Source: Squalus acanthias
Taxonomy: Eukaryota
Direction: 5' to 3'
NCBI GenBank assembly: GCA_030390025.1
Contig: CM059427.1
Coordinates: forward strand, 188,170,001 to 188,234,000
Length of the DNA: 64,000 bases
Below, one piece after another: positions 10,201 through 39,675 of the stretch. The position numbers and the translations under genes were made by a program. Each line of letters opens with the position of its first letter. Position 1 is the first letter of the stretch. The notes under the pieces are model-generated. The model was not told the origin of the DNA and did not search any database. It worked only from the letters and a program-made list of their open reading frames with translations.

Positions 10201-13200
10201 AAGGACCAGACATTCCTGGAAATGGCTCCATTGTCTGGGAATGGAGACCACACTCAGGGCAACAAACTACAAAGCAATTGGGAACTTTCCACAGAGAAGA
10301 TCAGCGGTGGGCGGTACAATGGCGCGAGGAGTACAATAATATACCAGGCATTTCTCAGAGGATACGTGAGGACTGGGGAACCCTTAATCTGAGAATCAGA
10401 AACCCCACCTTTGAACTTGCGGGATTGTTCACCTGGACTCAGACACAGCCCAGCAAGAAAATCCTGAAACAGTATGAAATATTTGGGATCAAAGGTAAGT
10501 AGCACAACAAATGGAAAGGATTCAATCATATAATTTTTTTGTGAGTAATTCCACAAATATTCCGAACAGAATGTTGGGATGATGTCCTGATCCTCCAGTT
10601 CTATCACCCAGCCCAGAATGAATCTCTTATTAAAAGCAGCCAGGTGGGTAAAAATCCTCTGTGCATTAGAACTAGTGGATGCACGAAGGGCTAGTAATTT
10701 TGATAGTTACCACTAGCATGTTGTTGCAATTTTTGTCCATCCTTCTAAAATTCCTGAGACAATGACCTTGGAGGAGGATGGAGCGGGTGGCGATGGTGTG
10801 GAATTCGTGGCGAGGGCCAAAGACGATGGCTTCAGTCTTCCAAATATTTAACTGGAGGAAATTGCGGCTCATCCAAGACTGATGTTAGACAAGTGATCTG
10901 ACAGCACAGAGGCAGTGGAGGGATTGAGAGTGGTGGTGGAGAGGTAGAGCTCGGTGTCGTGAATATGCATGTGGAGCTGACCCAATGTCTTTGGATGATG
11001 TTTAGCTGGAAGTAGGTGATCTTTGTGATGGAGACGATGTGGGGTCAGAAGCTTAGCCGAGGGCTAAAGAGTCTGCTTCAACCTGAGACAATGGCCAGGG
11101 AGAGAGATGTAGCTGCTTGTGATGTATGGAGATCGTGGTGCGGGCTGAAGAAGATGGCTTCGGCCTTCATATATTTAACTGGAGGAAATTACAGCTCATT
11201 CAAGACTAGATGTTAGGCAAGTGATCTGACAGCACAGAGGCAGTGGAGGGATAGAGAGAAGTGGTGGAAAGGTAGAGCTGCGTTTCATCAATACAGATGT
11301 GCAAGCTGAGCAAATGTCTTAAGATGAAGATTTACTAGAATGGGACCAGGGGGATGAGGGTCTTCTGTTATGTGGAGAGATTGGAGAAGCTGGGGCAGAG
11401 AACGTTAAGAGGAGATTTGATGGAGCGGTTCAAAATCATGAATGGTTTTGATTGAGTAAATAATGAGAAACTGATTCCAGTGGCAAAAGGGTCGGTAACC
11501 AGGGAAGACAGATTTAAGGTGATTGGTGACCAGATGCAGCATGAGGAAACATTCTTTTACACAGCGAGTTGTTGTGATCCCGAATGCACTGCCTGAAAGT
11601 GTGGTGGAAGCAGATTCAAGAGTAACTTTCAAAAGAGAATTGGATAAATACTTGAAGGAAAATATTTACAGGATATAGGGAAAGAGCACGGGAGTGGAAC
11701 TAATTGGATAGCTCTAGCAAAGAGCCGGCACAGACACGATGCACCGAATAGCCTCCTTCTGTGCTGTATCATTCTATGGGCCTGAAATTTGGCCCCTTAG
11801 CGCCGGCTGTTTAGGCCGGTTTTGTGGAAAAAATGTCACCCGCCTCACTTCTGCCTATTGGTGAAGCCGGCGTTCGGCTATTAACATATTCAAAGAAGGG
11901 GCCTTATGCCTGCTTCTGCTCCCTCTTGCAAATTTACTTGTATCTGTGACAGTCAGTGCCAGCAATGTTTACTCCCGGGAAAACAAACATTAATCAGTGC
12001 CGAATGAAAAAAAGGTAAGTACTTACCATTGGCATCTCTGACCTCACTCCCGACTCCGACCTCCAGGTCCTCTCTGATTTCCCCCAATGAGGCCCCGACC
12101 TCCAGGTCCCCCCGATGGCCCCGACCTCCCCCCGATGTTGTCCCCGAGTCCCGATCATCCCCCGCCGATCCTGGCCCCGTGTCCCGACCTACCTCAGAGT
12201 CTTTGCTGGGTGTTCAGACACTCAGCACGTTCAGTGCTGGGCTGAACGCCACAATAATGATAATCAGCCGGCGGAAACAAGTCCCGGTGCTGCCTGCGAT
12301 CTTTTTACGGGTGCGAGCAAACCTCGCCCCGCGGAGCCACTCCCGTTTACGGCATTATCGGATTTCTAGGCCGAAGATTCTATGTTGCCAAGGAGCAGCA
12401 TGTAGATGAGGAAGATGAGGGAGCCAAGGGGGACAAGTGGACATTATCTGGGAAATGTTCATAGTCAGCACTAAGCACGGCTGGTCAGCATTTGTCTGAC
12501 TGTGTCTGTTTGTAGAAAAAGAAAATTCTGAATGCAATAGTTCAGAACGTTTATGGAAAGCTATTCTACACGTCATTGATCTGTTTTTACAGTTGAGACA
12601 GATTCCCAGAGGCCTGTAATGGGCAGTGACATCACCCTCAGTTGTACCGTCTCCAGACTCTCAGATACAGTCAGTCTTCACTGGAAACCAAGAGACTCAT
12701 CTCAGCAGAACAGGAGGAACAACACCGATGAGATCCATCTGAATAACACGGTCTATCTGATAGTCAGACACGTTGGAGCAGAAAATCGGAATTTGTACAC
12801 ATGGGAAGTGCAGGAAAATGACTCCATTGTTCTCACTGGAAACACAAATGTTGATGTGGATCAGAGTAAGTCCAGAGCTAGCTTGCAGTAGGTGTTAAAT
12901 AGTTACTGATATAAAACTGTTACACATAAAGTACAGCGAGCACAGGCACCACTTTGGGCTTTTACTGCAGAATGTGGTCCTTGTTTTTGCCCTGGAACAT
13001 GGGTGTAAATATAAAATGGTGACATTAAGAGCTGATGTAACCAACCAGGTGAACTCAATGGATTCATTTCGATTCACATGTATGAATCAAAAAGAATAAA
13101 ATCCTTCAATATATAAAAGCAATTGCCATTCCAGTCTATTGGCCCCCCCTTGTGATCTGAACTGGATATTTGTGTCTATCGCAAGTGTCCTTTCTTAGTC

Positions 13201-16200
13201 TCTTTGAAGGCGGACTATAAAAAGCCTTTTGTGAGACAAGGCCAGAAATTAATTGTTAAACTGCTTTATCTCACAGCGAGTGATAAATAATGAACACGAT
13301 ACACTTTCCCACACCAGTGGGTCAACGATTGATTTAAACAATTGGGCTAGAAAGTTGTCGGTGTCACCGCAACTGGAGTTAACGGCTGCTGAAAATGGCC
13401 GCAACGCTAATGAGAATAAATTCATCTGGGGGGCTGGAGATTGGTGGCGCAGCACTAACCTTCCGTGCAGCGCCCCCTGTTGGTGTGAGTGGAGACCTGC
13501 AAGGTGAAGTTCCCGTCCTTCGCACCGCCTCTGGGAGCGAGGAATTGTGGGCCATTAAAAGGGCTGTGAACTAAAGGGACCATGCACTCAGAATTAATAC
13601 AATTTAAAATGCAGTGAAAAAAATGCAATTTTCAGCCCTTACTGCCTGTCAAAAAATATATATAACATTAAAAAGAAGTCCCAAATGTGATTGTTCAGCT
13701 CTTAAAGCTGAATTCCCTTCCGAACCTCAAAAAATAGGAAATCTGCTTCAGCACTAACACAAATGGCTCAGCAAGCCAGGGAAGGGGCACCCAGCATCTT
13801 GCACATATGGGATTTCAGAACATCTGTATCTCAGCAGCTGTATAAATCTAACACCTTGTTTCCTGTCTCTCTATTTCAGATTTACGCAATAAGAGTTACA
13901 CACTTTATCGGTCAGGCACAGATCACAGTGAACTCTCCCTGATTTGTGAAGCTGAATCTGAGATCATTAAAACTAACTGGACTTGGCGGTCACGTCATTT
14001 TCAGAATCAAGAGAAAGAAATAGCTTCTACATTCAGATCCAAGCCTATCGAAGTAAACAGGACCTACTTTGGGAGTCGACTGGTGCCCACAGTGGGAAAT
14101 TTTAATGACAAGAGCTTCCGTGTGAGGATTGTCCCCGTACTGTTTGAAGATGCAGGAGTTTACACTTGTTCTCTGGGGTTATTGAATTATGTGACCATTA
14201 AACTAATCACAGTTAAAGGTAGGAGACAGAATGCTGCAGTTGTTTTCAATGATAAAGTTGTGTAGAGTTTCCACTTTGGGCACAATCGGCGATTTTGGCA
14301 CAAATTGTGCCCAAAACTGCGCCTGTTTTGAAAAGTGTTTCCCCCCCACCCCCCGAGGTTCCACTCAAACTCATTTGCATATCACCAAACACGAAATCTG
14401 CCCTGAACCAGTGCAATTGGACAGTGATTTAAAACGTAATTTCTTTCTGCTAATTTTGCTTTAAAAAATATTCTAGGCTACATTTAAGAATGGTAACTTG
14501 GAGCAGTTTGCTTAATACAGCTGAAAGTGGGTTTATCACAAAAAATGAGCATTTTAAATCACAGTATCAATCCGCCACCTGTTAGTCGATTTTAAATGTC
14601 TGAAAATGACACAAAGAAATATACAGAACTGTTTTCTGGTTAGATTGGGGCACAGTAGTCCGTTCCTTAGTAATTTAAAAAAAATTATTTCAAAAATCTT
14701 TCAAAACGTGCGTATTCGTGTCCTCACGACCAAAAGATCCAGCTTCATTTTTGGAGCCTCCTCTTCGGCCTGCAAACGGGCGCAATTAGTGGAAACTCCC
14801 GATGGTGATTCGGTCACCCTGTGGGCGGGGCTAGTTTTGTGGGCAGGGCCAGTTTTGTGGGCAGGGCCAGTTTTGTGGGCATGACCAGTTTTGTGGGCGG
14901 GGCTAGTTTTGTGGGCATGACCAGTTTTGTGGGCGGGGCCAGTTTTGTGGGCATGACCAGTTTTGTGGGCGGGGCTAGTTTTGTGGGCAGGGCCAGTTTT
15001 GTGGGCATGACCAGTGTTGTGGGCGGGGCCAGTTGTGTGGGCAGGGCCTGTTTTGCAGGCGAGGCCTGCTTCTAGCGAGATGTCTTTTAAACTAGTGGAA
15101 AATTTCGCGGAAAATCGAGTTGCACTGAACGCATTTTGCGCTTAAAATTCCGCTATCGTTTGCGTTGGTTACGCCGATATCGGGCGAATTGTACCGAAAA
15201 AAACAACGCAATGGGGTGGAAACTCCAGGACATTGTTTAAAATCTAAATGATTTTCTTGTTTCCACAGTCACAGCTGAACCATCTGATGCAGTGACTGAG
15301 GGAGACACCGTTACCCTGACCTGCTCTGTCTCTGATGTCACTGAATCAATGAGACTTGTTTGGATCAATAGTGATGGCAAAACTGTTGGAGAAAAAACAT
15401 TGAATGGACAGAATGAGGAAGAGAAATCATTGAGACTGATTATTCAGAAAGCTGACAGAGGCAGAGGGAACTGGATATGCGCTTTGTTTTATCAAAACAG
15501 GCTCCGGGTTTTAGTCCCGTACTATCTGGAGCCCAGTGGTAAGTGACCCAGGATTTGCTCTTTATATTTATAATCTTGATAGAAAATTCTTATCACTTAT
15601 TGTTCTTGTTGCCAGAAGTAGCCCCTCCTTTATATCCTGTGTGTGAGGCTCTACAGTGGGGCAGAGCCTCAGAAAATCTACCCTGAGATAAATACTGTGG
15701 CTACAAGGGCAGGTCAGATGCTGGGGATTCAGCGACGAAGTGACTCACCTCCTGACTCCCCAAAGCCTTTCCACCAACTACAAAGCACAAGTCAGGAGTG
15801 TTATGGAATCCTCTCCACTTGCCTGGATGAGTGCAGCTCCAACAGCACTCAAGAAGCAAAGCTTCAAATTCAGAATTCCCATGTGGGCTCCCTGCACACC
15901 AACCCTGTCCAGCAACATCACCTGCTCTCTACATCCTGTTAAATAACATGAATTCTCAACAACACTCAAGATGCTCAACATCACCCGGGACAAAGCAGTC
16001 CGCTTTATTGGCAGCCCCTCCACCACCTCCACCACCGGCGCAACGTGACTGTAGTGGGGACCATTTACAAGATGCACTGAAGCAAATCACCAAGGCTTCT
16101 TCAACAGCACCTCCCAAACACACAAACTCTACCACCTAGAAGGACAAGGGCAGCAGGTTATTGGGAACACCATGACCTTCATATTTCCCTCCAAGTCACA

Positions 16201-19200
16201 CACAATCCTTACTTGGAAATATATCGCTGTTCCTTCATTGTCGCTGGGTCAAAATCCTGGAACTCGCTACCTAACAGCACCGGGGGAGTATATTCACTAC
16301 ACGGACTGCACAGGTTCAAGTAGGCGTCTCACCACCACCTTCTCAAGGGCAATTAGGGATGGGCAATAAATGCTGGTCCTGCCAGCGACGCCCACATCCC
16401 GTGAATGACAAAAAATACTCAGCACAGCCTGGGATTGAGCTTGGAACGTACCTGGTCTGTGTCTCAACTACACTCTTGGTAAACAGACTGAGACAGGGCA
16501 AGTTTTTTTGACAGCAGAGTGGTACAGAAGCCGTTTCGATTGATTTTCTGACCCAGAATTGATCAGAATACTGAGACAGAATGCAAAAAAAATCACAGCA
16601 AAAAGTCATTCTCAGCTGCAGAAATTGCAATTGAATCTCCCCACTATTCAGGCTCAGAGAAACTCTTCTTCTCTGCCTGTCTCAGCTGATCCTGGAAACA
16701 TCGGAGCCTCATCACTCTCATTCTAACTGAGGGCTCGTGCATTGTGAGCACAAAAGCAGGAAACTCGAGGCTCTGGGTGGCCTCCTGAAACAGGCTTTAG
16801 GCGTCTTGTACATGCAATTCTGGGTCCTAACGCCAACTGGAGGACCCCGATTGAAATTGGTGTACAGATGGGCGGAGCTTATGCCGGGCCAGCTCCAGCT
16901 CACTGTGCCAGGTTTTGAGTGGATGAACCACTGGTGTTTAACAGGACCGTTGGAGGCCACTCAAGAAATGGCCGGAAAACCTTTTAACAGTTGCATTTCT
17001 GTGGAGCCAGGCAGAGATGGAGTGCTTCTCCTGGCTCCACAATAATACTGCAGCCTGGGTTCGACCTCCACACAATGTTTGTGCCGGATTCTCACACGGG
17101 TCTTGTGATTCACTGAGCAGTGGGAATTCCTACAGAGTATCCGTGATCGGCCCCAGACAGCAATTCACCACCTCAACAGCACCTGTCCACGCACTGAGTG
17201 TTAATAATAGGCTCAGCAATATTACAAGGCAAGGTTTCACACCGAGCAGCACAGTGCGTGGATCCTGCGTTAGCTCCCACACTAGAAACCCCGCCAGAGG
17301 AACTTGGGGTCGATGTGAACTATCGGGTGTCTGACCGGCGGAGCGGGAGGGCGATGGACGGCCGCCCGATGGTGCTGACGGCAGGCCCGGTCCATGTTGA
17401 TGGACGGGCCTCATTAGCATCACACCGGCAGGCCTTGGGCAGAAATCGATGGGCCTACCGCCTGACTCCGGCCGCCCAGCGCTAGGCCCGGGAGACGATC
17501 GCCGCGGCAACAGTGACTGCAGGAATGGGGGGAAGGGGGTCTGAGCCATTCCTGGCCATTTTCCGGGACATCATCATTCTGATTCCACCAGCCGGGAGGC
17601 CTCAAAATTCAACCACTCACTCCCTGAACAGTGGGATTATAGGTCATTGAATACAATGGTACATTGAGGCTTGCAAACCAGATATTAGAGAAGACAATGA
17701 CATTGATATGGAGAGTAAACTAAAGACAAATGATTCAGGGATAACATGGAAGATCACATTCAATGTTCTGTTTAATAGTTTAAAATTAGGTTTGATAATC
17801 TTGACCATGATCAATGCCATGGGAGATGACCCAGTCGATCATAATTATACTGGACGTCTGTCTACTGATGAAATTGTCCATTTATATCAAGTACTTACCT
17901 CATCTAGTGTTACAATATTATATTAATTAAGATTTTGAAATAAAATATTAAATTAAATGTACCGTAGATAAACATTACAACAATGCACGAAACTTTGAAA
18001 AACATGCATACTAACACTGTGAAACATTAATAGTTTCAACAAAATTGCACTTTGTCAAAATAGGTGTTTTTTAAGTGAATTCCAGTTACAGATCTGTGGC
18101 TGTCTCACACCTTGATGGTTAATGTCTCCCCAGACAGCAAAGCCGAGATTGGGAACTCACCACCTGGGAGGTAGATAAACAATGGCAAGCATTTAAAGAT
18201 AGAATGATAAAATTGCAAAATTTGTTTATACCAATCTGGCATAAAAGGAAATCTAAAAAGGTGACTCAACCGTGGATAACAGGGGAAATTAGAGAAAGCA
18301 TAAAATCCAAAGATAGGGCGTATAAAATAGCCAAAAAAAGCGCCAGAGCGGAAGATTGGGAACAGTTTAAGATAGAGCAAAGGAAGACAAAGGGCTTAAT
18401 CAAGAGGGGCAAAATAGCTTACGAAAGCAAGCTGGCGGAAAATATAAAAACTAACTCCAAAAGCTTTTATAAGTATATCAAGAGGAAAAGACTGGTGAAA
18501 ACCAAAGTTGGTCCATTGCAGTCAGATACGGGGGAATATATAATGGGAAATAAGGAAATGGCAGACCAACTAAATGCATACTTTGGGTCAGTCTTTACGA
18601 AGGAAGACACAAAAAACCTCCCTGGGATATCGGGAAAAATAGGGACATTGGCAAAGGAGGAACTGATGCAAATCAATATCTCTAAGGATATGGTGTTAAG
18701 GAAGCTAAAGGGATTGAAGGCGGACAAATCCCCAGGGCCTGATAACATGCATCCTAGGGTACTGAAGGAGGTGGCACTAGAGATAGCGGATGCACTAAGT
18801 ATGATTTTTCAGAATTCATTAGACTCGGGAACGGTGCCCATGGATTGGAGGGTAGCTAACGTTACCCCACTATTCAAAAAGGGGGGTAGGGAAAAAGCAG
18901 GTAATTACAGACCTGTAAGCCTTACATCAGTTGTGGGCAAAATGCTGGAGTCCATCATTAAGGATGAAATAGCGGAGCACTTAGCAAATGGGGACAGGAT
19001 AGGACAGAGTCAACATGGATTTACAAAGGGTAAATCGTGCTTGACTAACCTATTGGAATTTTTTGAGGGAGTAACTGGTAAAATAGATGAGGGAGAGTCA
19101 GTGGATGTGGTGTACCTGGACTTCCAAAAGGCCTTCGATAAGGTCCCACATAAAAGATTAGCATGGAAAATTGAAGCTCATGGGATAAAGGGGCAAGTAT

Positions 19201-22200
19201 TGACGTGGATAGAGAACTGGCTGTCAGATAGAAAACAGAGAGTTGGAATAAACGGCTCATTTTCTGAATGGCAGGCAGTAACAAGCGGGGTACCACAGGG
19301 ATCTGTCCTGGGTCCCCAGCTGTTCACAATTTACATTAATGACCTGGATCAGGGAGTCGGATGCAGCATTTCCAAATTTGCAGACGACACCAAACTAGGA
19401 GGGGGGGTGGGCTCAGAGGAGGAGATCAGGAAGCTCCAGAGCGATTTGGACAGACTGGGTGATTGGGCGGATAAATGGCAGATGCACTATAATGTGGACA
19501 AGTGCGAAGTTATCCACCTTGGGTGCAGGAACGGGAGGGCAAATTATTATTTAAATGGCAATAAATTGGGAGAGGGGGAAGTACAGAGAGACCTGGGTGT
19601 TCTTGTACACCAGTCACTGAAGGCGAGCATGCAGGTGCAACAGGCGGTCAAGAAGGCAAACGGTATGCTGGCCTTCATAGCAAAAGGGTTGGAATACAGG
19701 AACAGGGATACCTTGCTGCAGCTGTACAGGGCACTGGTGAGACCACACCTCGAGTACTGTGTACAGTTTTGGTCGCCTCATCTGAGGAAAGATGTTCTTG
19801 CCATGGAGGGGGTGCAGCGGCGATTCACCAGGCTGATACCAGGAATGGCGGGATTGACCTATGAGGAGAGACTATGTAGTTTAGGGATGTACACACTGGA
19901 GTTTAGAAGATTGAGAGGGGACCTCATAGAAGTGTATAAAATTCTGACAGGTCTAGACAGACTAGATGCAGAAGGAATGTTTCCCTTGGCGGGTGAGAAC
20001 AGAACTAGAGGACATAATTTAAGGATAAGGGCTAAACCATTTAGGACAGAAATGAGGGGAAATTTCTTCACTCAGAGAGTGGTGAACCTGTGGAACTCAT
20101 TGCCACAGAGGGCAGTGTACGCCAGCTCATTAAATATATTTAAGAGGGAATTAGATATATTTCTACAGGCAAAAGGGGTTAAGGGTTACGGAGAGAAGGC
20201 GGGGACGGGATACTGAATTGGAGGATCAGCCATGATCACATTAAATGGCGGAGCAGGCTCGAAGGGCCGGATGGCCTACTCCTGCTCCTATCTTCTATGT
20301 ATCTATGTATCTATGAATCTCAGGTGTGAATCTGTATTCTGCCACTCTGGTCAGGACAACACTTTCACATCCAGTTTGCCAGTTTAGATAATGAATGACC
20401 CAATTTTGAGTTTAGAGTCTATACAGCACAGAAAAAGGCCCTTCAGCCCATCGTGTCTGCGCCGGCCATCAATCCCTGTCTATTCTAATCCCATTTTCCA
20501 GCAATTGGTCCATAGCCTTGTATGCTATGGCGTTTCAAGTGCTCATCTAAATGCTTCTTGAATGTTATGAGGGTTCCTGCCTCTACCACCCTCTCAGGCA
20601 GTGAGTTGCAGAAAATAACCACCCTCTGGGTGAAAAAGTTTTTCCTCAAATCCCCTCTAAACCTCCTGCCCCTTATCTTGAAACTATGCCCCCTGGTTAT
20701 TGACCCCTCTACTAAGGGGAAAAGTTCCTTTCTCTCTACCCTATCTATGCCCCTCATAATTTTGTACACCTTAATCAGGTCCCCCCTCAGCCTTCTCTGC
20801 TCTAAGGAAAACAACCCCAGCCTGTCCAGTCTCTCTTCCTAGCTGAAGCGCTCCAGCCCAGGTAACATCCTGGTTAATCTCCTCTGCACCCTCTCCAATG
20901 CAATCACATCCTTTCTATAGTGTGGCGACCAGAACTGCACACAGTATTCCAGCTGTGGCCTAACTAGCGTTTTGTACAGATCCATCATATCCTCCCTGCT
21001 CTTATATTCTATGCCTCGGCTAATGAAGGCAAGTATCCCATATGCCTTTTTAACCACCTTATCTACCTGTCCTGCTGCCTTCAGGGATCTATGTACATGC
21101 ACACCAAGGTCCCTCTGATCCTCTGTCCTTCCTAGGGTCCTACCATTCATTGTGTATTCCTTGCCTTGTTAGTCCTCCCAAAATGCATCACCTCACACTT
21201 TTCAGGGTTAAATTCCATTTGCCACTGTTCTGCCCATCTAACCAACCCGTCTATATCGTCCTGTAGCCTAAGGCGTCCCTCCTCGCTATTTACCACTCCA
21301 CCAATTTTTGTGTCATCTGCGAACTTACTGATCATACCTCCTACATTCATATCTAAATCATCAATGTACACTACAAACAGCAAAGGACCCAGCACCGATC
21401 CCTGCAGTAAACCACTGGACACAGGCTTCCAGTCACAAAAACAACCTTCGATCATCATCCTCTGCCTTCTGCCACTAAGCCTATTTTGGATCAAATGTGC
21501 CAAATTGCCCTGGATTCCATGGGCTCTTACCTTCTTGACCAGTCTCCCATGTGGGACTTTGTCAAAAGCCTTACTGAAGTCCATGTAGACTTATTCAACT
21601 GCAGCACCCTCATCCACACACCTAGTCACCCCCTTGAAAAATTCAATCAAATTGGTGAGACATGATCTCCCCCTGACAAAGCCATGCTGACCATCCCTGA
21701 TGAATCCCTGCCTCTCCAAGTGGAGACTAATTCTGTCCCTCAGAATTTTTTCCAATAATTTCCCTACTGATGTTAGGCTCATTGTCCTGTAATTCCCTGG
21801 TTTATCTCTACTACCCTTCTTGAACAATGGTACTATGTTAGCTGTTCTCCAGTCCTCTGGCACCTCCCCTGTGGCCAGAGCGGTTAGGAAAATTTGTGTC
21901 AGAACCCCTGCAATCTCCTCCCTTGCCTCACACAGCAGCCTAGGATACATCTCGCCTGGGCCTGGGGATTTATCTACTTTTAAGCCCGCTAAAACCGTTA
22001 GTACTTCATCCCTCTTAATATTATTTTGTTCAAGTATATCACAATCCCCCTGCCTGATTTCTATGCCTACATCGTCCTTCTCCATAGTGAACACAGATGC
22101 AAAATATTCATTTAAAACCTCAACTACATCTTCCGGCTCCACACACAGATTGCCACTTTGGTCCCTAATGGGCCCTACTCTTTCCCTGGTTATCATCTTG

Positions 22201-24515
22201 CCCTTAATATACTTATAAAACACTTTGGGATTTTCCTTTATTTTGCCCGCCACTGGTTTTTCATGCCCCCTCTTCGCTCTCCTAATTTCTTTTTTAAGTA
22301 CCCCCCTGCACTTTCTATACTCCTCTAGGGCTTCCACTGTTTTTAGTCCTTTGTATCTGCCAAAAGCCTCCCTTTTTTTCCTAATCCATTCTTGTATATC
22401 CCTTGACATCCAGGGTTCCCTGGGTTTGTAGGTCCCACCCTTGACCTTTACGGGAACATGTTGGCGTTGTACTCTCTCTATTTCCTTTCTGAAAGACTCC
22501 CACTGCTCTGATGTGGATTTTTCTACAAGTAGCTGATCCCAGTCCACTTTGGCCAGATCCTACCTTATCATATTAAAATCAGCCTTCCCCCAATTTAGAA
22601 CCTTTATTTCCAGTCCATCTTTGTCTTTTTCCATGACTAACTTAAATCTCACCGAATTATGGTCTCTGTCACCAAAATGCTCTCCTACTGACACTTCTAC
22701 CACTTGCCCGGCTATATTCCCTAGAATTAGGTCCAGTACCGCCCCCTCTCTTGTCGGACTTTCTACATGCTGGCTGAAAAAGCTCTCCTGGATGCAGTTA
22801 AAGAATTCCGCATTCCTCGAAGCCTTTCACACTTTGACTATCCCAGTTAATATTGGGGAAGTTGAAATTCCCTACTATTATTACCCTATTATTTCGACAT
22901 CTCTCTGAGATTTTCCTACATATCTGTTCCTCTATCACCCCCTGACTGTTTGGGGGCCTATAGTACACTCCCAGCAAAGTGCTTGCCCCCTTTTTGTGTT
23001 TAACTCCTACCCATATGGCTTCATTAGAGGAACCTGCTAAGATATCATCCCTCCTTACAGCAGTAATTGACTCAATGATTAATATTGCGACAACCCCCTC
23101 CTCTTTTACACCCACCTCTGTCTCGCCTGAAGATTCTATACCCCAGAATATTGAGCTGCCAGTCCTGCCCCTCCCTCAACCATGTCTCTGTGATAGCAAC
23201 AATATCATACTCCCATGTGTTCATCAACACCTTCAATTCATCTACCTTACTCGCAAGACTCCTTGCATTCAAATAAATGCCATCCAGCCTTGCCATACTC
23301 CCTTGTGCCGTTACATATTTGCTCTGCCTTCCAGGCTGACTTGTTTTTTCCTCTATATTTGGCTGTGCATCACCCCCTACTATAGCTCCACTCCGTATCC
23401 AATCCTCCTGCCAAGTTAGTTTAACCCCCCCGCCAACAGTACTAGCAAACCTCCCCGCAAGGATATTGGTCCCGTTCCGGTTCAGCTGCACCCCATCCGA
23501 CTTGTACAGGTCCCACCTTCCCCAGAAGCAGACGCAGTGATCCAGGAAACTAAAGCCCTCCCCCCAGCACCAATTCTTTAGCCACGCATTCATCTGCTCT
23601 ATCCTCCTATTGCTATACACACTAGCACGTGGCACCGGGAGTAATCCAAAGATTACAACCTTTGAGGTCCTGCTTTTTAATCTGCTACCTAGCTCCATAA
23701 ATTCTTGCTGCAGGACCTCATCCCTCTTTCTGCCCATGTCGTTGGTACCAATGTGAACCATGACCTCTGACTGTTCGCCCTCCACCTTCAGAATGCCCTG
23801 CAGCTGTTCAGTGACATTCACTCCCTTTTCATTCACTCAGAGCTTGTCACTTTAATTCAAAACCATTGCACCACAAGAATCTGTTGAAAATAGTCAAATC
23901 CAGACACGTAAATTGTGACAAAAAGAACACAACGTGGACTTGGTCTTGATGGAAATATTTGGCGCTCTGGTTCCCAGTGTTTAAAGCAGAATGTTTTCAC
24001 TTTCCACATCTTTTATAGAATGACTGGCAGGAGTATTTAAATATTAAACGAGATGGAGAGTGAAACTAAAATCTCAACTTTGTCCTTCACAGCGAGACCA
24101 CTTCCGGAGATTTGGATCATCACAGTTTCGGGCTACTTGTTGGTTAAACTGGGCGTTGCTGTTGGACTAATTTGCTGCTTGAAGAGGATGACCAGAGTAA
24201 GAATTTCTTTAAGCTTTCCAGTAAATCAGGAATTAGTGCCGAGCTGTCACTTGACACTGAGAAAACTGATGTTTGTTGAACAGATATTATGTGGTCACAA
24301 ACTGTATTTTAAAATTTAATTAAAATATTGTACATTGTACTGAATTTAAAGAAACCATCAGTTAAAGGAAGCAATTGTTCCAAATTTGGTGAAATCTTAG
24401 AGCTTTGAATATTTTTCCTGGTTCAAACGGCAATAACTTCCCTGCTCCCACTTTCCATCAGACTCTGAGGAAGGAATCAGGGCGATCTCGGAGGGCCATA
24501 CCTGATTATCAATGA
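1020..24515 (+). CDS. Gene A: spliced CD4/LAG-3-like multi-Ig type I membrane receptor, 5'-partial. Exons 1020-1289, 4168-4509, 4588-4857, 10150-10494, 12593-12865, 13880-14218, 15269-15538, 24093-24196 (TM), 24462-24515 (tail; alternative 26210-26317)
   Basis: All seven Ig exons have pyrimidine-tract AG acceptors and GT donors, phase-1 junctions on both sides, lengths divisible by 3 (270, 342, 270, 345, 273, 339, 270) and no stops. The TM exon ends in phase 0. Leader and D1 are predicted upstream of base 1 by collinearity with gene B. Confidence 0.85.
1723..1950 (+). pseudogene. Relic 3' third of a C2 (D2/D6-type) exon plus donor and intron start; also at about 56688-56915
   Basis: tgtgaagtgtagaaaaaagactctgttatt...gtgtggatcagggtaaggccagaactaccttacagta aligns with the D6 exon end and intron at 12790-13015; in-frame stop. 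Confidence 0.65.
2169..3660. mobile_element. Internally deleted PIF/Harbinger derivative (paralogous copy 57134-60249)
   Basis: Starts with TIR-like GGCCGGAATTTT; carries the transposase 5' region (+) and Myb/SANT exon remnants (-) homologous to 5169-9252. Confidence 0.75.
3731..4011 (-). mobile_element. Short Penelope-type insert with 13-bp TSD and decayed hammerhead-like core
   Basis: CAATTTTTAAACA at 3718-3730 and 4012-4024; absent from the gene B copy; minus strand reads CAGACGA-A-GGAGC-AGC-GCTCC-GAAA. Confidence 0.6.
4168..4509 (+). CDS. Gene A Ig domain D3 exon (V-type)
   Basis: attgcag|ATTTATAT ... GTTAAAG|gtagga; [28 protein letters not shown] (V-set DxGxYxC). Confidence 0.9.
4588..4857 (+). 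CDS. Gene A Ig domain D4 exon (C2-type, WxC motif)
   Basis: tccgcag|TCACAGCT ... CCCAGTG|gtaagt after a 78-bp intron; [19 protein letters not shown]. Confidence 0.9.
5715..6839 (+). pseudogene. Harbinger DDE transposase (HARBI1-like), frameshifted and deleted in the C-terminal half
   Basis: [18 protein letters not shown] (catalytic D lost), [18 protein letters not shown], acidic tail. Confidence 0.85.
7162..8961 (-). pseudogene. Harbinger Myb/SANT-like DNA-binding protein gene (spliced, degraded)
   Basis: [37 protein letters not shown]; basic C-terminus. Confidence 0.8.
10150..10494 (+). CDS. Gene A Ig domain D5 exon (V-like, no cysteines; paralogous to D1)
   Basis: ttcttgcag|GAAGCCAG ... 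ATCAAAG|gtaagt; [30 protein letters not shown]; clearly homologous to 54108-54448. Confidence 0.85.
10760..11320 (-). mobile_element. Degenerate LINE (L2/CR1-class) RT fragment with internal ~170-bp tandem duplication
   Basis: [18 protein letters not shown]; 10820-11000 is repeated at 11150-11325. Confidence 0.55.
11322..11777 (+). mobile_element. CR1 LINE 3' fragment
   Basis: Degenerate RGDL..FKI..FFTQRVV ORF2 end plus 3'UTR and ATTCTAT tail. Confidence 0.8.
11778..12372. mobile_element. Non-autonomous TIR element (Harbinger-type MITE) inserted in a CR1 tail
   Basis: GGCCTGAAATTT ... GATTTCTAGGCC termini; CpG-rich interior; CR1 attctat tail resumes after it. Confidence 0.55.
12593..12865 (+). 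CDS. Gene A Ig domain D6 exon (C2-type; paralogous to D2; F-strand Cys replaced by Trp)
   Basis: gtttttacag|TTGAGACA ... GATCAGA|gtaagt; [22 protein letters not shown]. Confidence 0.88.
13880..14218 (+). CDS. Gene A Ig domain D7 exon (V-type; paralogous to D3)
   Basis: tatttcag|ATTTACGC ... GTTAAAG|gtagga; [18 protein letters not shown]. Confidence 0.9.
14260..15231. mobile_element. 972-bp non-autonomous TIR element in the D7-D8 intron
   Basis: GAGTTTCCAC ... GTGGAAACTC termini; the empty 78-bp intron is visible in paralogous introns 4510-4587 and 60803-60880. Confidence 0.85.
14821..15055 (+). repeat. 18-bp minisatellite, about 13 copies, GTGGGC(GGGGCT/AGGGCC/ATGACC)AGTTTT
   Basis: Directly visible; contains GGGCGGGG GC-boxes. 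Confidence 0.95.
15269..15538 (+). CDS. Gene A Ig domain D8 exon (C2-type, WxC; paralogous to D4)
   Basis: ttccacag|TCACAGCT ... CCCAGTG|gtaagt; 83 of 90 aa identical to D4. Confidence 0.9.
15690..16410 (+). mobile_element. Degenerate LINE 3' fragment (paralogous copy about 61300-62020)
   Basis: [28 protein letters not shown]-like RT C-terminus and gggcaataaatgctgg tail. Confidence 0.7.
18170..20316 (+). mobile_element. 5'-truncated young CR1 LINE
   Basis: Uninterrupted 670-aa ORF2 fragment, 3'UTR and (TATGTATC)n tail. Confidence 0.95.
18204..20216 (+). CDS. CR1 ORF2 reverse transcriptase (N-terminally truncated, no endonuclease)
   Basis: [52 protein letters not shown]. Confidence 0.9.
   Translation: MIKLQNLFIPIWHKRKSKKVTQPWITGEIRESIKSKDRAYKIAKKSARAEDWEQFKIEQRKTKGLIKRGKIAYESKLAENIKTNSKSFYKYIKRKRLVKTKVGPLQSDTGEYIMGNKEMADQLNAYFGSVFTKEDTKNLPGISGKIGTLAKEELMQINISKDMVLRKLKGLKADKSPGPDNMHPRVLKEVALEIADALSMIFQNSLDSGTVPMDWRVANVTPLFKKGGREKAGNYRPVSLTSVVGKMLESIIKDEIAEHLANGDRIGQSQHGFTKGKSCLTNLLEFFEGVTGKIDEGESVDVVYLDFQKAFDKVPHKRLAWKIEAHGIKGQVLTWIENWLSDRKQRVGINGSFSEWQAVTSGVPQGSVLGPQLFTIYINDLDQGVGCSISKFADDTKLGGGVGSEEEIRKLQSDLDRLGDWADKWQMHYNVDKCEVIHLGCRNGRANYYLNGNKLGEGEVQRDLGVLVHQSLKASMQVQQAVKKANGMLAFIAKGLEYRNRDTLLQLYRALVRPHLEYCVQFWSPHLRKDVLAMEGVQRRFTRLIPGMAGLTYEERLCSLGMYTLEFRRLRGDLIEVYKILTGLDRLDAEGMFPLAGENRTRGHNLRIRAKPFRTEMRGNFFTQRVVNLWNSLPQRAVYASSLNIFKRELDIFLQAKGVKGYGEKAGTGY
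20410..23830 (-). mobile_element. CR1 LINE with ORF1 SGNH-esterase part and frameshifted ORF2 (APE endonuclease + RT)
   Basis: [15 protein letters not shown] (SGNH); [27 protein letters not shown] (APE); SKFADD (RT); split over 6 ORFs. Confidence 0.92.
24093..24196 (+). CDS. Gene A transmembrane exon with intramembrane Lys
   Basis: tccttcacag|CGAGACCA ... ACCAGA|gtaaga; (A)[34 protein letters not shown]. Phase-1 acceptor matches D8; hydrophobic run followed by basic stop-transfer residues. Confidence 0.85.
24462..24515 (+). CDS. Gene A candidate terminal cytoplasmic exon 1 ([17 protein letters not shown])
   Basis: ctttccatcag| acceptor, phase 0 matches the TM donor, AATAAA at 24655-24660. 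Confidence 0.55.
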   Translation, partial: TLRKESGRSRRAIPDYQ

Positions 24516-24654
24516 ATGGACAATGCTCAAACTAGGAGCCCAATCTTTTAATATTTTTCACTGATTATCACAAATATTCCTCCTGGAAATTAGTAACTTG
24601 AAAGTTGTCAGAAACCAATATTTGAACAGTTAAAGCACAACTAGTAAAAATTAC

Positions 24655-24660
24655 AATAAA
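24655..24660 (+). terminator. Candidate polyadenylation signal AATAAA for gene A tail exon 1
   Basis: 140 bp after the stop; retained in the duplicated copy near 25665. Confidence 0.4.
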
Positions 24661-25059
24661 AGGAAATTACTAATGTATTCTGTGACAATTAATGAGTTTG
24701 ATCATTTTAACGTGTGCTGTTATTCTTGTTGCTGTGGCCTGGTGGCGCTAGAGAGCTGCAGTAGTGTTGGGGCCCAGAAATGAATTTGTCGCTCTGCAAA
24801 CCACTTCCTCTGTGGCAGGTTTGGTTCACCTGATTTACTCAAAGTCAAATCTCAGTCGATTCAAAAGCAAAGTTTCTGTTTCAGAGAGACCTGTCGTGTT
24901 TGTATTCAAGGAAGGAGTGTTTCAAGCCTGTGTGCTTCTGGGTGAAGCGAGGCGTTGTAGAATGGGAACTATTGGGGTGAGAGGCACAGAAATGTGGTAA
25001 CTACTGGAAAGTTTGAACTTACATGAAGGTTGTGAGGTAATCTGTATTGCTCAGGATGT

Positions 25060-25275
25060 TTACTTAGAATTACATAGAATTTACAGCACAGAAACAGGCC
25101 ATTCGGCCCAGCAGGTCTGTGTCGGTGTTTATGCTCCACATGAGCCTCCTCCCACCCTACTTCATCTCACCCTATCGACATATCCTTCTATTCCTTTCTC
25201 CCTCGTGTACTTATCCAGCTTCCCCTTAAATGAATCTGTACTATTTGCCTAAAACACTGCTTATGGTTGCGAGAT
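25060..25275 (-). mobile_element. CR1 3'-end fragment
   Basis: tagaatttacagcacagaaacaggccattcggccc tail. Confidence 0.65.
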
Positions 25276-25487
25276 CCAGCGAGGAAGGAATAGGGAAATC
25301 TCTGAGGGGCAAAACTGATCATCAATGAATGAAATAAAAACAGAAAATTAATGAACATTGCTCACACTAGCAGCCCAATATTCTAGTTTTAAATTTTTTC
25401 TTTTAATTTACTATCACAAATATTCCTCATGGAAATAGGAAATTAGTAACTTGCATGTCGTCAGAAACCAATATTATTTGAACAGAT

Positions 25488-25619
25488 ACGATAGCAAAAT
25501 ACTGCAGATGCTGGAACTGCTGTTTCCAGTTCTGATGAAAGGTCTCGACCTGAAACGTTAACTCTGTTTCTCTCTCCACGGATGCTGCCTCGCCTGCTGA
25601 GTTTTTCCAGCGTTTTCTG
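25488..25619 (+). mobile_element. 132-bp Penelope-type insert with 14-bp TSD
   Basis: TTATTTGAACAGAT at 25474-25487 and 25620-25633; empty site visible at 24619-24630. Confidence 0.8.
25528..25563 (+). ncRNA. Minimal type I hammerhead ribozyme-like motif
   Basis: AGTT-CTGATGA-A-AGGT(CTCG)ACCT-GAAA-CGTT-AACT: conserved core, stem I AGTT/AACT, stem II, palindromic ACGT stem III. Confidence 0.6.
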
Positions 25620-26209
25620 TTATTTGAACAGATGTTTGAAAATGCACAACCAGTAAAAATTACAATAAACTGAACAGTACGACTGTATTTCGTGAAAATT
25701 AATGATTATGATAAACTTTACATCAGATCACAGCTCAGGGAGGTAATAAAAGAGACAGAATCAGTAGCTTTAGTAGGAGAGCATTGTTCTGTCAGAAGCA
25801 GAGTTGTCAGTTCAAGGAGGTAACTTTACTGGTGAGGTCAGTCGACCACAGGGAGAACCTCGTCGAATTGTGGTCACACTATGGCCATGAACTTTGACCT
25901 CAATGGTGTGACCTTATTTTATATTCATACATTAATTGTAGGAAAGATCTTCCACAATATCTTCTATCAATAACTGGAGTTAGTTTAACATTTTAATCAG
26001 GTCTGTTCCTTCCAATTACTGAAGCCTTTAATTGTTGTAATTATCTCATTAACACTGAGCCAGTGATGTGTGGGTCATGGTCTGTTCTGTTCCTCATTCT
26101 GTAAAATTACTGCTCCATTCGACTTCCTCTTTATCCATCACTTCCAGTTCAGTGTTTATTATTGAAGGATAAGCTCTTTATTTAAAGCACATTTCTTGCC
26201 TCTTGTCAG

Positions 26210-26317
26210 ATATCGAACAGCGGGAATTCACCCGAGCCGACAGGAAATAAAACGAATGATTCAGAAGAAGCCGTCGCATTACAGACCCTGAACTCTGATA
26301 CTGATCTGAGATCATAG
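26210..26317 (+). CDS. Gene A candidate terminal cytoplasmic exon 2 (ISNSGNSPEPTGNKTNDSEEAVALQTLNSDTDLRS*)
   Basis: atttcttgcctcttgtcag| acceptor, open in phase 0, hydrophilic; AATAAA near 26990. Confidence 0.55.
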   Translation: MSNSGNSPEPTGNKTNDSEEAVALQTLNSDTDLRS

Positions 26318-27179
26318 AATGACTGATACAGCACAGAAGGAGGCCATTCAGCCCATCATTCTTGTGCCCATCGAGATCTGCAGTCTCTGGAAACTAGATC
26401 GACCCAACTTGGGAAACTTTAGAAATAGATTTGTGGTTTTATTCTGGAGTTATTTTGTAGTATTTTTTTATGTAACTAGTTTAGTTTATATCCTGAAGTG
26501 TACATTTCAATAGTTCCCAGTCTCAGTATCTGTTACTTTACTTTACAAGTCCTAACTTGCCAGGTCGCTGTAAGAAATTCTAATGGTGGAAAATCGTGCG
26601 GACGTTGGGCTGAATTCCTGATCTCCACTCGTGACCGGTGAGGCTCCAGGCTGGGGACACAGTTTTATAACTGTAGGGACTGATGGTGACCCAGTGCTGC
26701 AGCCGTGTGTGGAGCTTGAAGTGTTGGGACGTGGATTTGTGACTGTGGGTCCCCAATGAGTGATCTCAGCTGGACTCTCTCTGCAGAGGAGCTGAATGGA
26801 GCTGAGCTGCTACAAATGAGTAGGAATGAAACTCAGCTCAGTAAATATGGGCGTCTCCCCTGCACCTCCCAGCACCTGTTCACACAACGAGATCACGGAA
26901 TCTCCGGAGAAGGTTGTCTCCATGCTCCCACCCAGGGAATTGTTTGCAGCAGAGTGCGACTAAAAGATTAACAGAAAAGAAACAGCATGAATAAAAGTTG
27001 TGGAAAAGTAAATCTGCAAATTAAAATGAGAATGATTACAGCTTTGGGAATGTTTTATTAATTTATCCTTAACAATCAATTAAAAACCCTGATAATCAAT
27101 TGTTTGCTGATTTTACTGATAGATTGTGATGAAGAGATTGGTTCGGAATGGAATGGGAAAGTGTTTCCTTTTGTCATTG

Positions 27180-27388
27180 AATCTCTCCTGCCCTCCACCC
27201 TATCACAGACCTTCCCCTTTGTTCTTTCCTCCCCCTCTTTTCACTGTCTCTGTACTTGATTACGAAGAGTTAAATCTCTAACATCTGCCAGTTCTGTTGA
27301 AAGGTCATCGAGCTGAAACATTAACTGTGTCTCTCTCCACAGATGCTGCCTGTCCTGCTGAGTATATCCAGCATTTTCTGTTTTTATT
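27180..27388 (+). mobile_element. Penelope-type terminal repeat fragment with mutated hammerhead core (27289-27327)
   Basis: Homologous to 25488-25619; core reads CTGTTGA...GAAACATT. Confidence 0.65.
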
Positions 27389-27489
27389 CCTCTTTAGACA
27401 CGTTGCAATAATGGGGAGAGTACCTTTCCCTTTTCATTTGACTCCATTCTTTTAACCATTTATGGGAATGAATCCAAGGTAATGCATCT

Positions 27490-27835
27490 GTGTACCTGAT
27501 AAACCCCTTCGAATCCAGCACAGCTCCAGTTCTGTACCTGATAAACCCCTTGGAATCCAGCACAGCTCCAGTTCTGGACATGATAAACCCCTTCAAATCC
27601 AGCACAGCTCCAGTTCTGTACATGATAAATCCCTTTGAATCCAGCACAGTTCCAGTTCTGTATCTGATAAACCCCTTTGAATCCAGCACAGTTCCAGTTC
27701 TGTATCAGATAAACCCCTTCGAATCCAGCACAGCTCCAGTTCTGGACATGATAAACCCCTTCAAATCCAGCACAGCTCCAGTTCTGTACATGATAAACCC
27801 CTTCGAATCCAGCACAGCTCCAGTTCTGGACATGA
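27490..27835 (+). repeat. 42-bp minisatellite, about 8 copies
   Basis: TGTACCTGATAAACCCCTTCGAATCCAGCACAGCTCCAGTTC unit, head-to-tail, no spacers. Confidence 0.95.
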
Positions 27836-29120
27836 CAAGACGGCTCAGCAAAAGCCTGAGATTGTTCTGTGTGAAACTTTCAGGCCTTTGATCTGCTCCT
27901 CGATTTCATAATAAACCTGAACTCACTTCCCCAGATTCTGGGTCACAAATAGTTTATCAAAATGTACAGAATTATTACAGTGAATGAAAATGAAGTCAAG
28001 AGAGATTCCCTCAACTGAAGTGAGGTGTGATCTGGTTGCTGAGTCGTCGCCTCCTAATCCAAGTTCGGAGAGTCCCTTCTGTAAGGTTTCCAAAATTTGC
28101 AGATCCCCAAAACCTAAGGAAAAAGGACTTTGGAACTACCCCAGAGTGATAAAAATGCATTTGGACCTAACATAAGGAATTTAAGACCAAAACCAAGCTT
28201 TGGCATTTTAAAAGGACATGTCTGGACATGTGAGGGAGAAAAGGCTGCACAAGACGTGGGATCAACCTCTGTAAATAGCAGTTTTGGGTATTGTATTGTC
28301 TGGGAATCGGGATGACCTCACTCAAGCCCCAGCAAGCATTTAACATTTGGACAATAGGCCCTGGAAGAAGGCAGCCCCACCCAAAACACAGGCCTCATTA
28401 AAACCTATCGCAGACCCATCAAAACCATGCATAATTCGAAGAATTCAAGACACCTTTTGAATATCCCCAGGCCCAAACAGGATGCCAGAAGCCTGTAAAC
28501 AATAAAACATCTAGTACAGCCATTACTTCATCAAAAACCAATCAGCCAGGTATCTATAGGAACAAGATTTGGCGTGTAGATAAAGGCCCTGCCTAAATGG
28601 GAGACATCGCAAGCCATCAGGACAATTTAACACCAAGTTAAACCCATCAAAACTTAACAAGCCCGCAAAACCAAGACAATGGAATGAACAGGCCTCAACT
28701 GAAACCTAAATCACTTCAACACGAACCGATTTAGTAAGGGGTTTTGGCGCGAAAAAGACAAAGGGGTAGAAATTAGGTCGCGCCCCATTTGGGGCGCAAA
28801 TATCGTCCGGACGCAAATATTAGCGCCTGGCGCTAATTATCGGCACTGACAGGAAACTTCACTTTTACCGCCCCGGGAGGTGAGTGGAGCGCTAAAGCAG
28901 GCGCGGCACACCTGTCTTAAGGCGCAAAGGCCAAGGAGTGAGGCGCTAACTCAGCACACGAGCGCAGCGCAGCTGCTGCCAGTTAGCGAGGGAACACAGA
29001 CACACTGGCGCCGGACACTTCTTAAAGCGGGGGGGGGCCACTTGCTCCCCAGCCACACCCTGCTCATTGCAGCCTTGAATCTCAGCCTGGAGAGACCTGT
29101 AATCCATTTTGCTGCCAAGC

Positions 29121-38420: not shown

Positions 38421-39675
38421 CTAAGTAAATCTGGCCAAGATGAGTGCATCCCTTGCATCCCGGGCAGCAATGTGCTCGCGTGCTGCTGCCGTTGGTTGAT
38501 GCGTCTCCACAAGCTGTTTGTTGTCGCTCTTCTCCTCCTCCTCCTCCTCTTCCTCCTCATCTGAGGAGGCTATGCGATGAGCCACTTGTACCTCAGGCAG
38601 CTGCAAGCCACGATGCTGAGCCATGTTGTGAAGTGCACAGCAGACCACGACGATTCTGGAGACCCTGGCTGCTGAGTACTGTAGGGCTCCACCTGATCTA
38701 TCAAGGCATCTGAATCACATCTTCAGCAAGCCGATGGTTTGCTCGATTATGGATCTGGTGGAAATGTGGCTGGAGTTGTAGCGCTCCTCAGCTTCGTTGG
38801 ATGGCCTCCTCAACGGCGTCATTAGCCACGTCTTCAAGGGATAGCCCTTGTCTCCAAGTAGCCATCCGAAAAAGTTGGTTTGGTGGACTGAAGAGTGGAG
38901 GCACACGAGACTGCCGCAGGATGAAGGAGTCATGGCAACTGCCAGGGTACTTGGTGCAAATTGCAAAATTTCCTTCTGGTGGTCACACACCAGCTGCACG
39001 TTGAGGGAGTGGAAGCCCTTGCGATAGACAAAAATACCTGGATTGTGACGGGGTGCCTTAAGGGCCACATGTGTGCAGTCCATGATGCCCTGCACCCTTG
39101 GAAAGCCTGCCAGATTAGCAAACACAACCGCACGCGCCGTTAAACTTGCTTGATCCTTGGAGAAGTTGATGTAATTCTGCATGATGGCAAAGAGGGCATT
39201 GGTTACCTGCGTGATACAAATGTGTGCGGCCACCTGGGAGATGCCGCTGATGTCTGCTCTTGATCCCTGGAATGATCCTGAAGCAAAAAAGTTGAGTGCG
39301 GTGATGACTTTGACGGCCACTGGTAAGGGGTGTCCACCCGCTCCTCTGGGCTCCAGGTCTTGCTGCAGCATTGCGTAGATGTCACCCACTACCTCTCGCG
39401 AAAGTCTGAGCCTCCTTTGGCACTGCTGCTCGTCATGTTGAGGTAGCTGATCCTCTGTCTGTAGACCCTGTTTTGGGGATATCTCCTGCACCGACGTGCT
39501 TATATGCGCTGGCGCCTTCTGGCCTGTGCAGCTTCAGGTGGGTGAGCAGCAGCTTGGAGCTCCTGCTGTTGCTCCTGCAGTTGGTGCTGCTGTTGTTCAG
39601 GGTTCTGCTGCTGCTGCAGCTGTTCTTCGTCTGAATCTGATGTCTAGGAGGAAAGGAAATAAATGGTTCCCATGC
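38421..39675 (-). pseudogene. Harbinger transposase, frameshifted
   Basis: [41 protein letters not shown]. Confidence 0.85.

Follow-up and report, generated by a model that had tools for sequence, protein, structure and literature searches.

The membrane anchor and its gene

The window analysed here is a 64-kb stretch of the Squalus acanthias genome (64,000 nucleotides; contig CM059427.1 of assembly GCA_030390025.1, positions 188,170,001 to 188,234,000), and it carries on its forward strand most of a gene for a surface receptor with many immunoglobulin (Ig) domains. Our subject is the exon of this gene that lies at positions 24093-24196 of the window (+ strand). It is confirmed as a real spliced exon that encodes a membrane anchor with a lysine buried in the transmembrane (TM) helix. 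We think it probable that this exon provides the anchor for the activating-type arm of a paired Ig receptor family of cartilaginous fish, an arm that would be coupled to a signalling adaptor.

Only frame 3 of the exon is open, over 34 residues, stops being present in both other frames. The exon is entered in phase 1 and left in phase 0, and its borders are of the AG/GT kind, with a pyrimidine run and cag immediately before it (...ccttcacag) and gtaaga after it. The lysine, encoded by AAA at 24146-24148 (+ strand), is residue 13 of a hydrophobic span of 24 residues (I6-L29) and is therefore counted as central. The best segment of 21 residues has a mean Kyte-Doolittle hydropathy of 2.11 with the lysine included. 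Since an acidic residue (E5) stands on the outer side of the helix and the basic run KRMTR on its inner side, the orientation should be that of a type I protein. A lysine close to the middle of the helix of a type I protein is a feature of DAP12-class partners, and it is found here. An earlier note on this DNA had reported a TM segment followed by KRMTR; the sole open frame gives the same reading, and the hydropathy supports a helix. The same note had pointed to two juxtamembrane cysteines as a possible palmitoylation site. Such a modification is possible in the window but is no family trait, since at least one cysteine occupies these positions in 16 of 28 sequences and none in the other 12 (window included, counted by eye).

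Upstream of the anchor lie seven Ig exons, all on the + strand, and together with the TM exon and the tail exon they are all open and have matching phases. D2 (1020-1289, C2-like, phase 1-1) matches Pfam Ig_2 at 4.1e-8 and Ig_3 at 5e-8 and is 89% identical to residues 135-224 of P0160 (P numbers denote retrieved homologous proteins). It is followed by D3 (4168-4509), a variable (V)-like exon of phase 1-1 with a cysteine pair, a V-set match at 6.1e-5 and family matches of about 70%, and by D4 (4588-4857), C2-like and of phase 1-1, with WKC in strand F and a match to Pfam ig at 8.6e-8. D5 (10150-10494, 345 nt, phase 1-1) is V-like, lacks cysteines and is rich in tryptophan; it is 84-86% identical to P0156 and P0161. 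D6 (12593-12865, C2-like, phase 1-1) is 93% identical to residues 336-426 of P0157 and has tryptophan for its second cysteine (YTWEV). The same tryptophan is found in 20 of 92 homologous domains of the retrieved proteins, which argues that D6 is an old, disulfide-less variant and not a damaged domain. D7 (13880-14218, V-like, with a cysteine pair, phase 1-1) is defined by its open frame, splice sites, Pfam and family matches, and D8 (15269-15538), the membrane-proximal C2-like domain with WIC in strand F, matches Ig_3 at 1.6e-6 and leaves in phase 1. The Pfam scan of the Ig exons recovered generic Ig families only, with no CD4-specific family, no match at E <= 1 for D5 and nothing for the first V exon of the downstream paralogue described below.

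The exit phase of D8 equals the entry phase of the TM exon across an intron of 8.5 kb, the split codon giving alanine, and this junction has a counterpart in the sawshark models P0160 and P0161, which read ARPLP(K/D)IW. Within the window the TM exon has no second copy: tblastn returned only the exon itself and blastn nothing. A local search by tblastn and blastn revealed no leader-like exon between D4 and D5. Furthermore, P0161 shows the same order as the window (D4 part-D5-D6-D7-D8-lysine TM-tail), and P0152 from Pristis has eight Ig domains and the same type of anchor. Consequently, D1 to D8 are read as one predicted gene of eight Ig domains, with the leader and D1 lying upstream of the window edge.

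Transcripts and splicing

Logan contigs of four runs, from two organisms and two studies, were placed on positions 23000-27400 at 90% likeness. In all four runs the contigs cover the TM exon and join position 24196 to 26210, which skips 2013 letters with GT..AG ends and defines the intron that separates the TM exon from the tail exon (24197-26209, + strand). The clearest case is a contig of 317 letters in run X2, of which 103 fall on the TM exon (24094-24196) without any difference, and another 158, with 11 differences, on the exon after it. Contig depth follows the exon, with values of 0-1 in the bin 23882-24028 against 7.9-160 in the bin of the TM exon in all four runs, and with a depth of 0 over the intron part 24764-25057 in three of the four. 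There are also unspliced contigs of lower depth that run from the TM exon into the intron (for example, record 3 of run X1, 24167-24745). The rise of depth at the exon, the GT..AG joint in every run and 27 protein matches together show that the exon is no chance reading, and the presence of the exon in transcripts, which the earlier note had made a condition of its proposal, is borne out by the spliced contigs.

The joined contigs are not identical to the window. Four differences in the tail exon (at 26249, 26254, 26255 and 26264) are common to all four runs, and X1 and part of X5 differ further at 26268, 26273, 26279 and 26296. Three of the four common differences alter the peptide (K>E, N>D and E>Q). 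The changes in the contigs turn GNKTND into GNETDD, the form found in the sawshark proteins. Several near-identical tail exons seem to be expressed.

The cytoplasmic tail

The tail exon (26210-26317, + strand) follows a polypyrimidine tract and a cag acceptor and encodes ISNSGNSPEPTGNKTNDSEEAVALQTLNSDTDLRS before a TAG stop; it is identified by the joint and by 73% identity to the tail of P0161. Once spliced, the tail consists of KRMTR and 35 further residues, 40 in all, and contains no tyrosine, phenylalanine, cysteine or histidine. This composition leaves no room for an activation or inhibition motif of the immunoreceptor tyrosine-based type (ITAM or ITIM), for the Cx(C/H) and (F/Y)xxL(D/E) motifs, or for an acidic repeat. 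A short tail with neither ITAM nor ITIM is a second feature of the DAP12 class, and neither pattern occurs in any of the 27 relatives that have the lysine anchor (K-class), 23 of which have no tyrosine in their tails. The unspliced frame (24197-24316, beginning VRISLSF) holds the tripeptide CGH, formally a CxH motif. We discount it, since the joined contigs splice this stretch out as intron and model P0014, whose tail is a read-through, has no CGH there. The claim that the tail lacks a CxC clasp, ITIM, ITAM and acidic repeats therefore holds for the spliced form, the formal CxH belonging to the read-through only.

The claim that there is no signalling tail at all was put too strongly. No known signalling motif is present, but the tail has an exon of its own with a motif that is conserved from sharks to skates. 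This motif, A(V/I)A(L/M)QTLNSD(T/P)DL or a close variant, was found in nine of the 27 K-class proteins and in the window, and tails of the LQTLNSDxDL type occur in the sharks Pristiophorus, Heptranchias and Scyliorhinus and in the skate Amblyraja. In four models of the eagle ray and stingray group (from Mobula and Hypanus, and P0024) an arginine-rich tail that runs to SYK(L/V)TEFR, or stops just short of it, replaces LQTLNSDxDL. Most other K-class models end early or run into intron. Note also that the K-class ray models P0024 and, from Mobula and Hypanus, P0182, P0183, P0189 and P0215 have an arginine-rich tail of the form …PQGCNRRGRARGHRRR.MSHQS, followed in three of them by YK(L/V)TEFR.

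Conservation of the lysine in a family of cartilaginous fish

A search with the D8 exon of 1.84 billion representative proteins gave 335 matches at E <= 1e-3, the first 30 or so at 55-80% identity. P0005 (Pristiophorus japonicus), the closest protein of full length, matched 78 proteins, all from cartilaginous fish. The family spreads over at least seven species of sharks and eight of skates and rays, and a single chimaera model also belongs to it. Almost all of the P0005 matches are uncharacterized or hypothetical proteins (some are called 'Ig-like domain-containing'); two are labelled 'CD276 antigen homolog' and one 'VCAM1-like', and none of the 78 is named CD4 or LAG-3. No retrieved protein is identical to the exons of the window, the best reaching 86-93%.

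The TM exon itself, in a local search, recovered 27 proteins at E <= 4.7e-6, and eight further matches at E >= 0.65 were taken as chance. The lysine aligns in all 27, from sharks, skates and rays, and is never replaced by arginine, so that the conservation on which the earlier proposal had been made to depend is seen in every relative of the exon. Around the lysine, and with the window counted, glycine at +6 is present in 28 of 28 sequences and leucine at +7 in 27 of 28. Tyrosine at -4 and leucine at +1 formed part of the pattern by which sequences were selected; the residues at +6 and +7 did not. Other positions of the helix vary, and a fixed lysine in variable surroundings fits a focal polar contact. 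In P0008 of Heterodontus francisci a cysteine-less V domain of the D1/D5 type is joined directly to a lysine anchor in a protein of five Ig domains. The use of exons in the family looks modular by such comparisons of protein models.

Activating-type and ITIM-type members

We classed 95 family proteins by anchor and tail, leaving out the distant multi-Ig matches P0006, P0023, P0026 and P0028. The lysine anchor is present in 27 of the 95. Another 31 combine an uncharged anchor with at least one ITIM-like motif, typically IxYA(S/T)(V/L/I) and VIYAQI, in seven an uncharged anchor goes with a tail that is short or cut, and the models of the remaining 30 contain no strong anchor. The two main classes meet most closely in Pristiophorus japonicus, where P0005 (lysine anchor, short tail) and P0154 (neutral anchor, ITIM-like tail) are the same at 422 of 435 ectodomain residues. 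Since the 13 differences are scattered, the two proteins are products of two genes and not splice forms of one. Similar ectodomains combined with opposite types of helix and tail are the mark of a paired family, and this combination is seen in this related species. On one contig of Hypanus sabinus, the locus numbers of K-class and ITIM-class genes follow one another directly, a hint that the clusters are mixed.

By its predicted proteins, then, the family is one of paired activating and inhibitory Ig receptors of cartilaginous fish, and it is old, both arms being common to sharks and batoids. The ITIM-bearing paralogues that the earlier note had suggested looking for in the neighbouring sequence exist as 31 members of the family, including the pair with ectodomains 97% identical in one species, although none is found within the window. 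An alternative splicing of the present gene to an inhibitory tail is consequently unsupported within the 64 kb. Note that two ITIM-tailed models, P0004 and P0162 (the latter from Mobula birostris), have an arginine inside a helix that otherwise belongs to the neutral class (VVITWVVALRLIIILVMVLCLRK), so that a basic TM residue and ITIM-like motifs stand in a single chain.

The ectodomain and its likeness to CD4 and LAG-3

A profile built from 19 family proteins and compared with solved structures matched chains of LAG-3 with E values between 4e-9 and 6e-8, and CD4 with values between 5e-7 and 8e-6. The same profile matched CEA at 2.7e-10 and PD-L1 at 5e-8, no less strongly, and the sequence alone therefore does not single out CD4 and LAG-3. 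More informative was a predicted model of P0005 (predicted local distance difference test score 75.9, predicted template modelling score 0.66), in which one long strand (residues 132-147) spans the border of D1 and D2 and another (336-350) that of D3 and D4, and residues 443-475 form a helix. Strands that cross domain borders are described as rare and typical of CD4 and LAG-3 in section 3.6 of Takizawa et al. (2023, PMC10768021). A Foldseek search with the model placed LAG-3 at the top (1e-17) and CD4 within the first ten. With a second structural aligner, four-domain CD4 structures came first, with Z scores of 17.8, 17.5, 16.4 and 15.5 over 317-328 residues, and the next protein other than CD4 was nectin-1 (Z 13.8). 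The large root-mean-square deviations (rmsd) of these CD4 matches, 12.8-22.9, are attributable to hinged halves. The D3-D4 half on its own superimposes on CD4 D1D2 with an rmsd of 3.2-3.9 over 167-176 residues and on LAG-3 D3-4 with a Z of 12.9, an rmsd of 3.6, 160 residues and 22% identity.

On this modelled evidence the build of the ectodomain is CD4/LAG-3-like: in the predicted model of the homologue P0005 we see V-C2-V-C2 with rod-like V+C2 pairs and a continuous strand. Membership in the CD4/LAG-3 family is only partly supported. The mark that the sections of Takizawa et al. (2023, PMC10768021) used here single out as most telling for this family, WxC in strand F of D2 and D4, is half present, with WKC in D4 and WIC in D8 but YAC in D2 and YTW in D6. 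Section 3.2 of the same study defines shark CD4 and LAG-3 by their Cx(C/H) and (F/Y)xxL(D/E) tails, the LCK motif of shark CD4 taking the form CxH, and the window gene has neither tail motif nor an uncharged TM helix. Further differences are the absence of cysteines from D1 and D5 of the family, the forms with eight domains, the many paralogues and the split into activating-type and ITIM-type genes. In CD4 the domain that lacks a disulfide is D3. The CD4-like ectodomain of the earlier note thus stands at the level of fold and architecture (profile, model and structural matches) and not as a statement of membership.

Adaptor coupling and alternative explanations

The assembly of receptors with the DAP12, DAP10 and Fc gamma dimers centres on one basic and two acidic TM residues, according to those parts of the study by Feng, Call and Wucherpfennig (2006, PMC1440944) on which we rely here and below. 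Every type I protein that is known as a partner of human DAP12 is described there as having a TM lysine near the centre of the helix, replacement of this lysine by arginine lowered KIR-DAP12 assembly to 15%, and inhibitory counterparts lack the basic TM residue (PMC1440944). Given this published rule, the central lysine of a type I protein favours a DAP12-type module over FcR gamma, and the helix in the window agrees with the DAP12-type pattern in each of these respects. Adaptor binding, the identity of the adaptor and an activating output are what we infer from these comparisons, and the steps would be as follows. The product would be a type I surface protein of repeated V-C2 units with an invariant central lysine and a tyrosine-less tail of 40 residues. 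Within the membrane the lysine would contact the aspartate pair of a signalling dimer held together by a disulfide, most likely a DAP12-type module, and the binding of a ligand would lead to ITAM phosphorylation and to signalling of the Syk/ZAP-70 type. The opposing signal would come from sibling genes that combine nearly the same ectodomain with an uncharged helix and ITIM-like tails. The earlier note had proposed a CD4-like ectodomain rewired to a natural killer (NK) or myeloid style of activating output, and this interpretation is supported in part: splicing, conservation of the lysine, ITIM-tailed counterparts and the CD4-like fold speak for it, and the constrained tail and the poorly conserved cysteines do not.

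Several observations weigh against this adaptor-coupled reading. The runs that supplied the contigs are guessed to be of RNA, and none of the 15 runs found is on record as such. The contig stretch 23000-27400 reaches the joint between the TM and tail exons and not that between D8 and the TM exon. Moreover, the shorter side of the joint measures 30, 26 and 27 letters in X1, X5 and X6 where 31 are needed, so that strictly one run bridges the intron. The joined contigs and the window disagree at four to eight places of the tail exon, so that what is expressed may come from an allele or from a close paralogue. The conservation of the tail motif from sharks to skates suggests that the tail may act by itself. 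The pairing of activating-type and ITIM-type genes was demonstrated in another species and not at this locus, and the 64-kb window holds no ITIM-class exon, the best match (E 0.056) being the TM exon with the lysine. Shark DAP12 was absent from the literature searched, which lay mostly outside subscription journals, and the relevant parts of Feng et al. (2006, PMC1440944) name adaptor modules for mammals, amphibians and bony fishes only.

A receptor that works without any adaptor, its lysine serving oligomerisation, another partner, retention in the endoplasmic reticulum or turnover, and its output passing through the motif of the tyrosine-less tail, would account for the presence of that motif in nine of the 27 K-class proteins and in the window, and for the arginine-rich tail that the ray models have as their own, tails that look constrained within lineages. 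This tail however contains no known signalling motif, and ITIM-tailed siblings with near-identical ectodomains are the signature of paired receptors, in which the short-tailed arm uses adaptors. Furthermore, the lysine and the glycine at +6 are invariant while flanking helix residues vary, as in a focal polar contact (PMC1440944), and we regard independence from adaptors as unlikely. Another explanation keeps the adaptor and changes its identity: the role of partner could fall to FcR gamma/CD3 zeta or to a CD3 heterodimer, on the model of the T-cell receptor (TCR) chains, which use TM lysines too. The basic-acidic principle is indeed common to the TCR-CD3, Fc gamma and DAP modules (PMC1440944). 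Fc gamma partners, however, have an arginine that sits N-terminally in the TM helix, in its first third, and replacement of this arginine by lysine reduced the assembly of Fc alpha RI (PMC1440944). Here the lysine is at position 13 of 24 and arginine occurs in none of the 27 relatives. There remain in favour of an FcR gamma or CD3 partner the resemblance of the ectodomain to T-cell co-receptors and the helix itself, in which LLxKL and small residues recall the helices of TCR chains. On balance we judge such a partner rather unlikely too.

The two other explanations carry far less weight. It is very improbable that the exon belongs to a decaying copy, a pseudogene exon transcribed within a cluster of fast turnover that yields no working protein. 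The cluster is full of transposon open reading frames (ORFs), the first V exon of the neighbouring paralogue has 341 nt, not a multiple of three, and the tail exon of the joined contigs departs from that of the window, all of which would suit decay; but all seven Ig exons and the TM and tail exons are open with phases that match, the tryptophan of D6 is old and shared, and the X2 contig shows 0 differences in 103 letters of the TM exon. That the gene is shark CD4 or LAG-3 itself is hardly credible, and we rejected this candidate. The V-C2-V-C2 build, WxC in D4 and D8, and CD4 and LAG-3 as best structural matches of a relative would agree with it. The charged TM helix, a tail with neither Cx(C/H) nor (F/Y)xxL(D/E), eight Ig domains instead of four, many copies per genome, YAC in D2 and YTW in D6, and the lack of any database name CD4 or LAG-3 would not.

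Comparison with other paired receptors

The adaptor-coupled arm that we favour most closely resembles the activating KIR (KIR2DS/3DS) and their association with DAP12: a type I Ig receptor with a central helix lysine and a short tail without tyrosine motifs. As with KIR2DL/3DL, there are sibling genes whose ectodomains are nearly the same, whose helix is neutral and whose tails bear ITIMs, and both systems form multigene clusters. The present family differs in its V-C2 repeats (four or eight domains), which are of CD4/LAG-3-like build and not of the KIR domain type, and in its restriction to cartilaginous fish. The likeness is one of design, with an adaptor binding that is putative here. We know of no KIR counterpart of the conserved tail motif.

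Other paired families with a basic TM residue are TREM, CD300, SIRP-beta, Siglec-14/-15/-16 and PILR-beta, together with NITR and LITR, which are families of bony fish, and MDIR of the skate. They share with the present family a ligand-binding chain, a buried basic residue, an ITAM adaptor and ITIM-tailed counterparts, and its ITIM-class tails (IxYAxV/L ... VIYAQI) use the motif vocabulary of these families. They differ from it in the types and counts of their domains, and none was recovered as a specific relative, the Pfam matches being generic Ig families and the profile search covering the Protein Data Bank (PDB).

It is a speculative and rather doubtful proposal that the CD4/LAG-3 lineage has a third branch, made up of many genes and working as a paired system in the manner of KIR, and that the family is this branch. 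Were this true, the fact that CD4 activates and LAG-3 inhibits would be what survives, in single-copy form, of an ancient family of paired receptors, and sharks would hold a long-sought germline receptor system of NK or myeloid type, possibly one that reads ligands like those of the major histocompatibility complex. In mammals and bony fish, paired families such as KIR, LILR, Ly49, NITR and LITR play a central part in innate recognition, and to our knowledge, apart from isolated reports, no such family has been characterised in sharks and rays. A description of the present family was not found in the literature searched, with the same restriction to mostly open sources. The buried lysine and the adaptor mechanism are already textbook matter; what is new is the family, its age and the type of its ectodomain. 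A CD4/LAG-3-like ectodomain combined with a KIR-like paired design offers an entry point to the questions of when adaptor-coupled signalling arose in jawed vertebrates, which shark cells bear NK-like receptors, and where the CD4/LAG-3 design originated.

The second copy and other contents of the window

A second copy, beginning at about 51.4 kb and comprising a leader and D1 to D4, agrees with the first to about 95% over long stretches. In this downstream paralogue the first V-like exon (54108-54448) has 341 nt compared with the 345 nt of D5, a base being missing near its 3' end, and its exit phase is 0 although the exon that follows is entered in phase 1. The paralogue is either broken or makes use of another donor; a donor at 54407 would keep the phase. 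When 60844-62385 is compared with 15232-16772 and 4012-5052, the D4 exon of the paralogue proves similar to D4 as well as to D8 in the first gene, and the DNA 3' of this exon is a 94.6% match to the intron after D8, not to the DNA after D4. As judged from these matches, the second copy may be a gene of four domains, or the gene of eight domains may have arisen by unequal exchange.

Besides the family copies, the window contains transposon-like ORFs. One of 697 codons (18123-20213, + strand), located within the intron between D8 and the TM exon, has an FADD motif and reads like a reverse transcriptase of a long interspersed element. The ORFs at 5694-6536 (+) and 38718-39533 (-) have a conserved ORF in common that is transposase-like. 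Finally, tandem repeats that are open in several frames occur at 14704-15141, with KTGPAH-like units in the intron between D7 and D8, and at 27472-27888, downstream of the tail exon, with INPFESSTAPVLY-like units of 15 codons.

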